A DNA stretch of 64,000 nucleotides, from NCBI GenBank assembly GCA_977020255.1, contig CDROCS010000506.1, forward strand, positions 2,232,001-2,296,000, given 5' to 3'. This document shows, piece after piece, positions 1,772-5,345 of this stretch (position 1 is the first letter of the stretch; the number at the start of each line of letters is the position of its first letter). A program made the position numbers and the translations under genes. Under the pieces are notes generated by a model. That model made no database searches and was not told where the DNA came from. It was given only the letters and a program-made list of their open reading frames with translations. Origin of the DNA: Obrimoposthia wandeli (taxonomy: Eukaryota).

Positions 1772-2260
1772 TTAATGCATCCAACAAATATGATTGAATC
1801 CTTCGATATTATTAGCGGAGTAAAGATAAAGGAAGTTACCCTTTCGTTCAACCTTATAATTTATCGTAAAGTCTTTATATAATAATTGATCATTGTTGAT
1901 GACGGCATCAGGATGCTTTTTGGTAAAAATAATATTATTGAAAGTCATCGATAAGCTATTGCCGTTTAAAGTATATTTGCCTACGAAGAGAAATTCAGCT
2001 GTATCGGTTTGACCATTTTTATTCTTCACCAATAATCTGTCTTGGATATAGAAATCGCTTTTAGAGGTAAACGTATACGCCATTGTTTCATTAATAATGG
2101 CATATTTTGAGTATGCATTCGTGGCAAAGCCAACTTTTTTAAAGTCACAGAACCATTGACCACCAACTAAACTTACATTGGCAGTCATGAATGTTTTACT
2201 AACTAAAACAAAAAATAAAATAATTATCAAAATTATTGGTTTAGTTAAATATATTTGCAC
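1772..2260 (-). CDS. Membrane-anchored periplasmic beta-rich protein, ToxS/lipocalin-like candidate
   Basis: N-terminal hydrophobic anchor IILIIILFFVLV, a GGQWFC motif, alternating beta-strand pattern, two Cys (one near each end). Divergent from a ToxR-like gene. Confidence 0.55.
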   Translation of the reverse strand: MQIYLTKPIILIIILFFVLVSKTFMTANVSLVGGQWFCDFKKVGFATNAYSKYAIINETMAYTFTSKSDFYIQDRLLVKNKNGQTDTAEFLFVGKYTLNGNSLSMTFNNIIFTKKHPDAVINNDQLLYKDFTINYKVERKGNFLYLYSANNIEGFNHICWMH

Positions 2261-2345
2261 TTAGCCACCATTGCGCTCATTTTGTTCTGTGTTATGTAAC
2301 GACTAAATATAAGCAGTTAGTCGTATAATAAAACATTAAATTATA

Positions 2346-3311
2346 ATGTATTATATGCAGCTTTATTGCTTTTACGCAGTGAAATATTTTATATCTAATG
2401 AAATGCAGGCATTAATGATCCATAAACAGTCAATAACTCAATGTATTCGCATTGATCCTGAGATGCGAACTATTACTTGTCTTTCTTCCAACGTGACTGT
2501 GAACATGCGTCCTCTGCCCTTTAGAGTGCTAATGTATTTATTAAAACATCAAGATAGATGCATTTCTAGAGACGAACTATTCGAAGTATGCTGGCAGGGA
2601 GCTATTGTTTCAGAGCAATCCTTAACTAATACCATTAGTTATATAAGAAAAACGATAAAAAAACTCGAATCTAATGAACTGAAACTTAATACCATTAGTA
2701 AAAAGGGTTATTCATTAGTTATTACCTTGAATAATAAACTTCCTGAAGATAACCATGATGACAACATTGTTGATACAACTGAAGAGTTGGATAAACTTAT
2801 TACACTAGTTGATGGTTCCAGTGACTGTGATAAAACTGCTCACAGTAAGTCATTAATGGTAGATAAAAAAATAGAGCTATCCGTAACTAAGCGTAGTTAT
2901 ATAAATTATATCTGGTCTTTTGTGAGCATCATATTAACATTGACGCTGATTTTTTTGATCGCCAAGGATAATAAGGGAAGCGCACCTTTTATGGATGAAA
3001 AAAACTATCAACTTTATAAATTGGATAATGTGGACGTCTATATGAGTGATGTTGATGGGTTACTTGATGAGGATGAATTTAATAAATATCTAGATAATTC
3101 AAGCTTAAATTCGTGTGATATAAATAAGGTTTATATTAGAGTTTATACAGATCCCTATGACAAAGAAAATGTCGCCATGAGTGCTTTTAGTATAACTCCA
3201 AGCCATGAAAGTCTGAATATTATCAATTACAAACTCGTAGATAATAAGCTCTATACCTCTATATTAGAATCTATTCAAGATGATGAATTTTGTCATGGTT
3301 CATCAATCTAA
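2346..3311 (+). CDS. ToxR/CadC-like transmembrane winged-helix transcriptional regulator (true start may be a later ATG)
   Basis: OmpR-type wHTH (RVLMYLL...ISRDELFEVCWQG..VSEQSLTNTISYIRK...TISKKGY), linker, single TM helix YIWSFVSIILTLTLIFLIA, and a ~110 aa periplasmic domain with 2 Cys. Confidence 0.85.
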   Translation: MYYMQLYCFYAVKYFISNEMQALMIHKQSITQCIRIDPEMRTITCLSSNVTVNMRPLPFRVLMYLLKHQDRCISRDELFEVCWQGAIVSEQSLTNTISYIRKTIKKLESNELKLNTISKKGYSLVITLNNKLPEDNHDDNIVDTTEELDKLITLVDGSSDCDKTAHSKSLMVDKKIELSVTKRSYINYIWSFVSIILTLTLIFLIAKDNKGSAPFMDEKNYQLYKLDNVDVYMSDVDGLLDEDEFNKYLDNSSLNSCDINKVYIRVYTDPYDKENVAMSAFSITPSHESLNIINYKLVDNKLYTSILESIQDDEFCHGSSI

Positions 3312-3467
3312 AATTAGCTTTCTAAAACTGGATTATTTCATCTTAATGCAACTCATCGAGTACTAAATATTGTATTTATACGTAGTTTTTATAATAAAAA
3401 TATAACCAAAATAAATATCATCATACATTTATAATTTATTTTAATTAATAAATTCAATAATTTATAG

Positions 3468-3516
3468 TGTTTCTTTGTTGTTCATTATGTTTATTTATTG
3501 ATATGTTTCTTTATTG
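3468..3516 (+). repeat. Three direct repeats TGTTT(C/A)TTT(G/A)TTG upstream of the OMP gene
   Basis: Copies at 3468-3480, 3488-3500 and 3504-3516. Confidence 0.55.
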
Positions 3517-3589
3517 TTTATTTTTTCTTGAAATTTAACTTTATTATGCAGCCTGATTTAAATGAGAATTCAAGATTAAAAGGTAAGTA

Positions 3590-4213
3590 ATGAAAACAAC
3601 AATGATAGCCACGACAACCTTAATGTCGGTATTGATGGTAAGTACTGTATCGGCGAATGAATCAAGAGGATTTTATCTTGGTGGTGCAATCGGAACTTCT
3701 GGTATTGATGATGGTGGATTAGTTGAAAAATCATTGGTTCCAATAGAGATTAACGCTGAGGATTCTACCTATAAAATCATTGCAGGTTACCAGCTTAATA
3801 ATATTGCTGCGATAGAAGCACAGTATACAAATTATGGTGATATTAGTTTCAGCTCTCCATCGCCATTATACCCTTCAGGTAAGTATACATGGACCCCTAA
3901 AGTATTATCCTTAAGCGCGAATTTAGGTTATACCTTTGATAACGGTATTCGTCCGTTTGGTATTATTGGTGTGAGTTCTATCGACTTAGATGAGTCGGTA
4001 CAAAGTATTGCCGATAGTGACAATGGCGGGGGTGTTCGTTATGGTTTTGGCATCGAGTATATTCCATATAACCCGTATGAGACTTACGCTGATGTTAGTA
4101 TTAGATTTGGCTATGAAGCTGACACTTTCACTATTGAAAGTGGTAACGCTGTAGTCGGAGATAAAGATATTGTTCTAGATTCTTACTATGTAGCGGTTAA
4201 CTTTCGCTTCTAA
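3590..4213 (+). CDS. Outer-membrane beta-barrel protein (OmpA-like 8-stranded / porin family)
   Basis: Signal peptide, GFYLGG start, GYQLN..AIEAQY strand motifs, C-terminal aromatic ...VNFRF (BAM signal). Confidence 0.85.
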   Translation: MKTTMIATTTLMSVLMVSTVSANESRGFYLGGAIGTSGIDDGGLVEKSLVPIEINAEDSTYKIIAGYQLNNIAAIEAQYTNYGDISFSSPSPLYPSGKYTWTPKVLSLSANLGYTFDNGIRPFGIIGVSSIDLDESVQSIADSDNGGGVRYGFGIEYIPYNPYETYADVSIRFGYEADTFTIESGNAVVGDKDIVLDSYYVAVNFRF

Positions 4214-4264
4214 GTACTCCCTTTCATTTTATTCCAATAGCTGACTTATATTGAAAGGTAAGTA

Positions 4265-4561
4265 ATGAAAGCTGCAATGATAAGTGTAGTGATAACGACG
4301 ACTGCGCTAATGTCGGTACTGATGGTATATGCTGTATCAATTCATGAGTTAAGAGGCTCTTCTGGTGATGTAATGACTTCTTCTAAAAGTGATGAGGGGC
4401 TGCTTACAGGAGAACAATTCACAGAAACAGCCAAGATTGATGCACCTTGCCCAAATTATGGTGATAACTGCAGGAGAGCTCCGTTGGGGAAATTTAGGCG
4501 AAAACGCATAAATTCTAATTATATTATCTTTAAGCGAAAAATTAGATTATCTCTTCGATAA
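4265..4561 (+). pseudogene. Decayed tandem duplicate of the upstream OMP gene
   Basis: Same RBS context (aaaggtaagtaATGaaa). Nucleotide similarity over the signal peptide (taatgtcggta.tgatggta...tgtatc...atga.t.aagagg) and at caaattatggtgata. The rest diverges and has no C-terminal Phe. Confidence 0.7.
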
Positions 4562-4664: not shown

Positions 4665-5345
4665 TTACTCGATTAACAGCGCAACAGTTTCTTGTAATTC
4701 TGTTAACTGCGCTTTAAGTGTCGCGACTTCATGCTCAAGTTCATCAACGCGCGTAGCTAATGCGTTATTCTCATCGGCGCTGTTATTGCTCGCCAGTGCT
4801 GAGTTATCTGTAGTGGCAGCTGTCGACGCTACTGCTCCACTGAATAGATGGGCATAACGACAAGCACTTTGTCCCGGCTCTCTATCCAGTTTAACGATAA
4901 ATGGACCTTGTTCATGGTTGGCCAGTTGATCTAATGCCGTTTCAACTTCTTGCACATCATTAAATGCATGTTGGCGCGCCGAACGGGTTCTTAGTTCACC
5001 AGGTGTTTGCGGACCACGTAAAAATAATAGCGTCAAAATAGCTAATTGTTGTGGGTTGAAACGAATTTTACTGAACTCAGTATTGCCAAAGCGATGACGA
5101 ATTTTAGCACTGCGTTTACCGCCATTTTCATCGTTTATCACTAAGTGTTTTTTTACCAAATCATCAACAATGTTTTGTACTTCGTCTGGGCTTAATGACA
5201 GTACAGGTTCGCGGCTGCTTTTTTGATTACACGCCGAGGTTAATGAGTTTAGCGATAGCGGGTAATTATCTGGCGTTGTGTGTTCTTTTTCGATTAATGC
5301 GCCTAATACGCGCGTTTCATGTAGTGATAATTCATCCATTACCAA
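4665..5345 (-). CDS. yceH: YceH family protein (DUF480)
   Basis: RVLGALIEKEHTTPDNYPLSLNSLTSACNQKSSREPV and LLFLRGPQTPGELRTR motifs; C-terminal coiled coil. Confidence 0.9.
   Translation of the reverse strand: MVMDELSLHETRVLGALIEKEHTTPDNYPLSLNSLTSACNQKSSREPVLSLSPDEVQNIVDDLVKKHLVINDENGGKRSAKIRHRFGNTEFSKIRFNPQQLAILTLLFLRGPQTPGELRTRSARQHAFNDVQEVETALDQLANHEQGPFIVKLDREPGQSACRYAHLFSGAVASTAATTDNSALASNNSADENNALATRVDELEHEVATLKAQLTELQETVALLIE

Follow-up and report, generated by a model that had tools for sequence, protein, structure and literature searches.

Here we describe a gene cassette that probably encodes a transmembrane transcription switch of the co-component type, in the class of ToxR/ToxS and VtrA/VtrC, belonging to an unnamed sequence family restricted to the Vibrionaceae and Moritella. 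The cassette lies in a stretch of 64,000 nucleotides (positions 2,232,001 to 2,296,000 of contig CDROCS010000506.1 in the Obrimoposthia wandeli assembly GCA_977020255.1; hereafter the window). It pairs a membrane-tethered winged helix-turn-helix (wHTH) regulator with a small anchored protein, the partner, encoded head-to-head with it, and a gene for an outer-membrane protein (OMP) follows the regulator. The sensor class itself is already known; what is new is the sequence family and a rearranged layout with a recurrent OMP neighbor. We establish the modeled folds of the sensor proteins, the family, the conserved pairing of its two genes and the recurrent link to an OMP gene. The core features, numbered from the first letter of the window, are:

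1772 to 2260, minus strand: partner gene, 162 amino acids, with an N-terminal anchor and a periplasmic eight-stranded barrel that is ToxS/VtrC-like in its model
2261 to 2414: shared divergent control region between the partner and regulator genes, 154 bp
2415 to 3311, plus strand: regulator gene, 298 amino acids, a membrane-tethered wHTH regulator in a frame open from 2346
about 2415 to 2780: wHTH domain of the regulator, CadC/ToxR-type
about 2907 to 2963: transmembrane helix of the regulator
2964 to 3308: periplasmic domain of the regulator, a folded domain of about 115 amino acids with invariant C234 and C293

Partner protein and its predicted fold

The partner gave zero matches in Pfam and NCBIfam, and the Pfam ToxS family (PF17323) did not match it at E <= 1. 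A search of PDB sequences with a profile built from 21 members of the partner family returned nothing at E <= 10, VtrC (5KEV chain B) included. An AlphaFold2 model computed on the family alignment is confident (mean predicted local distance difference test score, pLDDT, 91.4) and consists of a helix at residues 6-23, eight strands and one short helix. When this model was compared with the PDB by Foldseek, the top three matches were ToxS periplasmic domains (8u2f, 8alo_B), followed by VtrC; the ToxS matches have E values of 3e-5 to 6e-5 and target-normalized template modeling (TM) scores of 0.71-0.74. VIA-align ordered the structures in the same way, with Z 15.1 for the ToxS of the ToxRS heterodimer (8alo_B; 131 residues aligned, root-mean-square deviation 2.4), Z 13.6 for ToxS of Vibrio parahaemolyticus (8u2f), Z 12.2-13.0 for VtrC and Z <= 10.1 for all other lipocalins. 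An earlier note on this DNA, made from the sequence alone, had proposed a membrane anchor at the N-terminus and a ToxRS-like partner role; the helix of the model supplies the former, and the confident barrel, matched best by ToxS and then VtrC ahead of ordinary lipocalins, supports the latter.

The partner contains exactly two cysteines, C38 and C159, and both are invariant in the family alignment together with W36 and Y53. In the model, C38 falls within the strand at 35-43 and C159 within the strand at 157-161, which are the first and last strands of the barrel, and a C38-C159 disulfide probably clamps it. The terminal cysteine pair of the earlier note is thus redrawn, as the two residues are not adjacent in sequence, and its GxW motif also gives way: the motif of the family is G-[ST]-x-W-x-C, and the literal GxW (G34-Q35-W36) is a chance feature of this one protein. 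Outside the cysteine strands, the best-conserved segment is H-x-D-x-x-I-N at residues 116-122, which occupies the loop and the single helix of the model. Translation of the partner starts at a GTG at 2260, preceded by a GGTGG Shine-Dalgarno sequence, and other Moritella have GTG or ATG at the same position.

An exhaustive profile search of 1.84 billion proteins places the partner family in 18 clusters at 50% identity. The ten clusters that were looked up are all annotated 'hypothetical protein' and come from Vibrio, Photobacterium and Enterovibrio. We had considered the partner an orphan when a word-index search gave only three relatives; the profile search and the genomic context showed this to be an artefact of sensitivity, and the idea was dropped.

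Membrane regulator

The regulator matches Pfam Trans_reg_C (E 5e-12) and has a single hydrophobic span, at about residues 165-183 of 298 by hydropathy, in agreement with the single-pass wHTH protein proposed from the open reading frame (ORF) at 2346-3311. The start of that ORF needs revision: the true start is most likely the ATG at 2415 (MIHKQ), because relatives begin at MIHKQ, an AGG stands 5 nt upstream, and the ATG at 2346 lies inside a conserved promoter-like block. A further candidate start is the ATG at 2403. The best NCBIfam match is CadC, a partial one that covers only the portion from the wHTH to the transmembrane helix and scores 52.7 against a family cut-off of 400 bits. By sequence, the solved structures nearest to the wHTH are CadC (E 3.5e-9) and ToxR (E 6e-7).

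The periplasmic domain can be aligned across the whole family, and C234 and C293 are invariant throughout it, one central and the other near the C-terminus as the earlier note had described. Searching the PDB with a sequence profile of the domain gave no meaningful match. Its AlphaFold2 model (pLDDT 86) has a beta-alpha-beta3-alpha fold, for which the top three Foldseek matches are all VtrA, at a weak E of 2e-3, with 18-20% identity and a target-normalized TM score of 0.62. This modeled resemblance agrees, weakly and not decisively, with a sensor pair.

Identity between the window and Vibrio lentus is 65% in the wHTH domain, 53% in the partner and 29% in the periplasmic domain of the regulator, which makes the last the fastest-evolving part; the system had been called fast-diverging, and in these relative terms (29% against 65%) the description holds. 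Between Moritella species, selection as measured by the ratio of nonsynonymous to synonymous substitution rates (dN/dS) is purifying for the partner (0.10-0.33), the regulator (0.19-0.32), the OMP (0.14-0.22) and a 98-amino-acid ORF beyond it.

Conserved pairing and a derived gene order

A sample of 401 genomes of the order, centered on Moritella PE36, was searched with the partner profile and yielded 15 partner loci, spread over 12 genomes from Vibrio, Photobacterium, Enterovibrio and Moritella. A homologous regulator is present at every one of them, adjacent to the partner in 14 and two genes away in the other, and no partner homologue among the 15 loci lacks a nearby regulator. The co-occurrence expected by the earlier note is therefore found at all partner loci examined, across two bacterial families and four chromosomal contexts. 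A scan of the genome contigs with a degenerate pattern recovered two Moritella loci only. The four arrangements are:

Moritella: partner and regulator divergent, with the OMP gene following the regulator in the same direction
Splendidus-clade Vibrio: partner at a distance from, and divergent to, the regulator; no OMP gene
Subgroup B: regulator then partner, in overlapping ORFs; no OMP gene
Subgroup C: OMP gene divergent to a regulator followed by the partner, the latter two in overlapping ORFs

M. marina, PE36, JT01, Moritella sp. 36 and two relatives from metagenomes all have the divergent partner-regulator pair at the same site. In Vibrio lentus, the partner (50% identical, E 3e-56) and the regulator (39%) are found at another site, between alaS and recA. 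At the Splendidus-clade loci (L011, 3836-4791; L030, 4989-5938), a Tpx/AhpC-like redoxin of 168 amino acids and a 92-amino-acid ORF without a family match separate the partner from the regulator. The position of a thiol peroxidase between two proteins with conserved cysteine pairs may be significant or a coincidence.

Trees of the partner and of the regulator yield the same four groups, and in both trees the two head-to-head groups fall together on one side of a split with support 0.96-1.0. To our knowledge, every other known family of the class is regulator-first, and the deeper branches of this one, with overlapping regulator-then-partner ORFs in 10 loci, keep that order as well. For these reasons the head-to-head layout, which the earlier note had rightly singled out as unusual, most plausibly reflects one derived rearrangement, limited to Moritella and Splendidus-clade Vibrio. 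The Moritella order could have arisen from that of subgroup C by inversion of the regulator gene alone. The rearrangement uncouples the translation of partner and regulator.

The divergent transcription in the window, and the two unrelated genes that separate the pair in Vibrio lentus, would also suit a partner that is an independent membrane-anchored lipocalin, such as a lipid carrier, lying by chance beside a one-component CadC-like regulator. A chance neighbor, however, would not be expected to show a regulator at 15 of 15 partner loci, 10 of them with overlapping ORFs, nor two congruent trees, and we hold this explanation to be highly improbable.

Relation to known sensor systems

The cassette shares with ToxR/ToxS (8ALO, 8U2F) a membrane wHTH regulator with a two-cysteine periplasmic domain, a small anchored partner with an eight-stranded lipocalin-like barrel, for which ToxS is the best structural match to the model, and linkage to outer-membrane protein genes. 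The two invariant cysteines of the regulator parallel the Cys236-Cys293 disulfide of ToxR, a protein that switches OmpT and OmpU (PMC10624426). Unlike the toxR-then-toxS operon, the window genes are head-to-head, and their neighbor is a small OmpA-like barrel and not an OmpU/OmpT porin. The positions of C38 and C159 on the end strands of the partner model suggest a covalently closed barrel; since in ToxRS a ToxR strand fills the gap between the first and last strands of ToxS (PMC10624426), the interface may differ from that of ToxRS in detail.

Because a true ToxS (PF17323) coexists with two members of the window's family in one Vibrio genome, the family is a separate paralogous system rather than a diverged orthologue of ToxS. 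No ToxS (PF17323) was found in four Moritella genomes. The only ToxS of the assembly (L035, contig C122, 61821-65261; PF17323 E 1.8e-75) belongs to a canonical toxR-toxS operon, flanked by htpG upstream and by an OmpU-like porin downstream; given the four Moritella genomes without ToxS, contig C122 probably comes from a second bacterium, likely of the Vibrionaceae.

VtrC, of the VtrA/VtrC pair of Vibrio parahaemolyticus (5KEV, 5KEW, 8DML), comes second to ToxS among the structural matches of the partner. In contrast to that pair, the window locus has no type III secretion system or vtrB context, and its regulator keeps two cysteines where VtrA has no disulfide (PMC9214523). A VtrA/VtrC homologue is reported to exist in M. 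marina (PMC4933562). That genome has a second cassette (L053, 468-1797, at about 1.205 Mb of G101:C1), in which a 286-amino-acid wHTH regulator overlaps a downstream 164-amino-acid membrane-anchored protein. The second cassette is unrelated in sequence to the window's family (hhalign probability 0.2%), and no PDB sequence matches it; it may be the homologue reported for M. marina.

In the FidL/YqeJ group (YqeI/YqeJ, MarT/FidL, GrvA/FidL), a conserved disulfide joins the barrel's N- and C-terminal strands, and the regulators keep a cysteine at their C-terminal end (PMC9214523). C38 and C159 of the partner and C293 of the 298-residue regulator resemble this pattern. The FidL group has no solved structure, and the partner was compared with it by sequence and published description. 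Pfam FidL_like (PF15941) did not match the partner, and hhalign against four FidL-like sequences gave a probability of 0.5%. FidL_like cassettes also differ in being regulator-first operons in enterobacterial pathogenicity islands. Lacking a profile match to FidL-like sequences while having the ToxS/VtrC fold, the partner family is distinct in sequence within the VtrC-like structural superfamily.

CadC is the solved protein closest in sequence to the window wHTH; unlike the window regulator, it has its own large periplasmic domain and no barrel partner. This affinity, together with the invariance of both periplasmic cysteines of the regulator, would be in keeping with a partner that acts only as a chaperone or protease shield and binds no ligand, the signal, as with CadC, coming from the regulator's own disulfide through its redox or pH state. 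ToxS and TcpH do shield their regulators from proteolysis (PMC10624426, PMC11323476). Against a shield-only role, in both ToxRS and VtrAC it is the barrel fold that binds the ligand (PMC4933562, PMC10624426), and the H-x-D-x-x-I-N segment is conserved on the partner's loop and single helix; in VtrC, the helix that follows a disordered loop shifts upon ligand binding (PMC4933562). Shielding and ligand sensing are moreover compatible with each other, and a partner confined to the former appears unlikely.

The linked outer-membrane protein gene

Downstream of the regulator, the relevant features are:

3312 to 3589, plus strand: OMP upstream region, 19% GC
3468 to 3480, 3488 to 3500 and 3504 to 3516: three direct repeats TGTTTNTTTNTTG, 75-120 bp upstream of the OMP start
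3590 to 4213, plus strand: OMP gene, a small OmpA-like beta-barrel of 207 amino acids with a signal peptide
4265 to 4561, plus strand: 98-amino-acid ORF, in part a tandem duplicate of the OMP gene's 5' end

The OMP gene that the earlier note had placed directly downstream is confirmed by its matches to Pfam OMP_b-brl (PF13505; E 2.6e-19, 70.5 bits against a cut-off of 28.7) and OmpA_membrane (E 8.7e-9, 35.8 bits against 21). A homologue (E 1e-28 to 1e-34) adjoins the cassette in each of the four subgroup C loci (L032, L033, L034, L048) and in five of seven Moritella loci. The proposed link between sensor and OMP accordingly holds in part, for it recurs in a distant branch with another geometry and is absent from several branches.

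The sequence TGTTTNTTTNTTG matches the 64-kb window at its three sites alone, against 0.24 matches expected, for a pattern defined with the site already in view. The proximal copy and a T-rich block are kept across Moritella. Proteins of the OmpR/ToxR wHTH family usually bind direct repeats, and the three repeats are putative binding sites of the regulator, a candidate operator and nothing more.

From this context the OMP is a likely regulatory target of the cassette. The pair might instead be functional with its regulon elsewhere, the adjacency of the OMP reflecting only shared AT-rich territory silenced in the manner of H-NS. Such a reading would account for the persistence of the pair without an OMP gene in subgroup B, Splendidus-clade Vibrio and two Moritella species (sp. 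36 and JT01). It would also fit the relationship between the linked OMPs of Moritella and subgroup C, which are not clear reciprocal best hits and whose orthology is not established by that measure: a Moritella paralogue that is not linked comes as close or slightly closer. We nevertheless consider it quite unlikely that the OMP is no target, as the same OMP family adjoins the pair in two branches that differ in gene order, the linked copy is the sole member of its family in two subgroup C genomes (G074, G350), and clustered direct repeats, typical of OmpR/ToxR-type sites, precede the OMP gene.

Divergent control region

Within the region between partner and regulator, a block TTATAATGTATTATAT at about 2340-2356 is nearly invariant in seven Moritella sequences and carries TATAAT on each strand. 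From the sequence, this pair of motifs is predicted to serve the partner and the regulator as divergent -10 boxes that overlap. A scan for consensus promoters and terminators found promoter-like sites no more often than in shuffled sequence; it returned nothing useful between the genes and left TTATAATGTATTATAT unflagged.

Proposed mechanism

By analogy with the solved systems, we infer a heterodimer, a ligand, disulfides, an operator and a target. The regulator would reside in the inner membrane with its wHTH in the cytoplasm and its small alpha/beta domain, closed by a two-cysteine disulfide, in the periplasm. The partner, anchored beside it by one N-terminal helix, would expose its lipocalin-like eight-stranded barrel, and the two periplasmic domains would pair as a heterodimer, as in ToxRS (8ALO) and VtrAC (5KEV) (PMC10624426, PMC4933562). 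The constant association of the two genes and the agreement of their trees lend such a heterodimer indirect support. The barrel may then bind a hydrophobic ligand or report the state of the envelope, stabilizing and activating the regulator. Once activated, the regulator would bind AT-rich DNA, for which the TGTTTNTTTNTTG repeats upstream of the OMP gene are the likeliest site. Binding would turn on the OMP gene, whose promoter is probably silenced beforehand, and possibly the divergent partner and regulator promoters as well.

Several observations weigh against this proposal, in addition to the missing and imperfectly matched OMP neighbors given above. There is no sequence-level link from the partner to ToxS, VtrC or FidL by Pfam, PDB profile or hhalign. 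In VIA-align, VtrA reaches a Z of only 7.4 to the regulator's periplasmic model, level with the unrelated HPF/YfiA at 7.8, and ToxR's own domain (6utc) is only 48th in the Foldseek list for that model. The TGTTTNTTTNTTG motif, defined post hoc, is absent upstream of the OMP in the distant branch, subgroup C. The only RNA on the locus consists of two 151-nt contigs from one seawater metatranscriptome, at 2209-2359 and 2464-2614 with 0-1 mismatches, which could be explained by DNA carry-over; a host-labelled RNA run has zero reads on the stretch.

A more far-reaching version of the switch, and a rather doubtful one, is that in Moritella the cassette is a functional stand-in for ToxRS that remodels the outer membrane upon an envelope or host lipid cue. 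With the two genes placed on divergent, overlapping promoters, the ratio of partner to regulator could then be set independently, for instance by autoregulation, and a sensor built as an obligate heterodimer would turn into a tunable one.

Significance

Co-component sensors of the ToxRS/VtrAC type are known mainly from enteric pathogens, and the family described here extends the reach of the class to cold-water and deep-sea marine bacteria. Many fast-evolving families of the class were predicted by Kinch et al., whose list of 14 cassettes does not include the window's family; their screen demanded a downstream neighbor in the same orientation, with the regulator first (PMC9214523). Screens based on operon order would miss pairs such as this one, as the two genes can be uncoupled and inverted and still stay linked. 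A three-gene module of sensor, partner and candidate OMP target, in a genus without canonical ToxRS, offers a simple system for the study of sensing outside the gut. We expect the mechanism to follow precedent, so that the cassette extends a known class and overturns nothing.

Composition and source of the locus

All ORFs named in the earlier note were found at the positions it had given, as was its AT-rich block, which at 1772-3589 has 29.3% GC against 42-44% in the flanks. The genes on either side of this block are:

863 to 1753: LysR gene, on one flank
4665 to 5345: DUF480 gene, on the other flank

An origin of the block as a recent island was considered and dropped, since the same LysR and DUF480 flanks recur in every Moritella species that was examined.

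The window consists of bacterial, Moritella-like DNA, and its contig (C506) measures at least 2.29 Mb in an assembly of 1.35 Gb and 6,912 contigs; a contig of bacterial type in an assembly of eukaryotic size means that its source is a symbiont or contaminant genome. DNA nearly identical to the window is also contained in food and marine metagenome runs.

The partial tandem copy and minor observations

The 98-amino-acid ORF copies the ribosome-binding site, signal peptide and first strand of the OMP gene, its DNA being about 80% identical over roughly the first 110 nt, and matches the OMP in phmmer searches at E 1e-5 to 1e-11. Beyond the duplicated part, it continues into unrelated sequence that contains cysteine and ends in a conserved basic tail. 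M. marina and PE36 keep the frame open (68-74% identity, dN/dS 0.36-0.52); it may encode a small secreted protein or be a remnant in slow decay. In Moritella sp. JT01 (L014), the regulator-partner pair is intact and the locus has zero OMP matches. In Moritella sp. 36 (L009, 5940-6532), the full OMP gene is gone, and the conserved OMP promoter and ribosome-binding site precede a 68-amino-acid ORF of the remnant type, as expected from recombination between tandem OMP copies.

Two giant proteins, P0070 (4,799 amino acids; E 1.5e-6, nine stretches) and P0071 (3,240 amino acids; E 3.5e-4, four stretches), weakly match the partner profile; these matches may represent repeated barrel-like modules or compositional noise.

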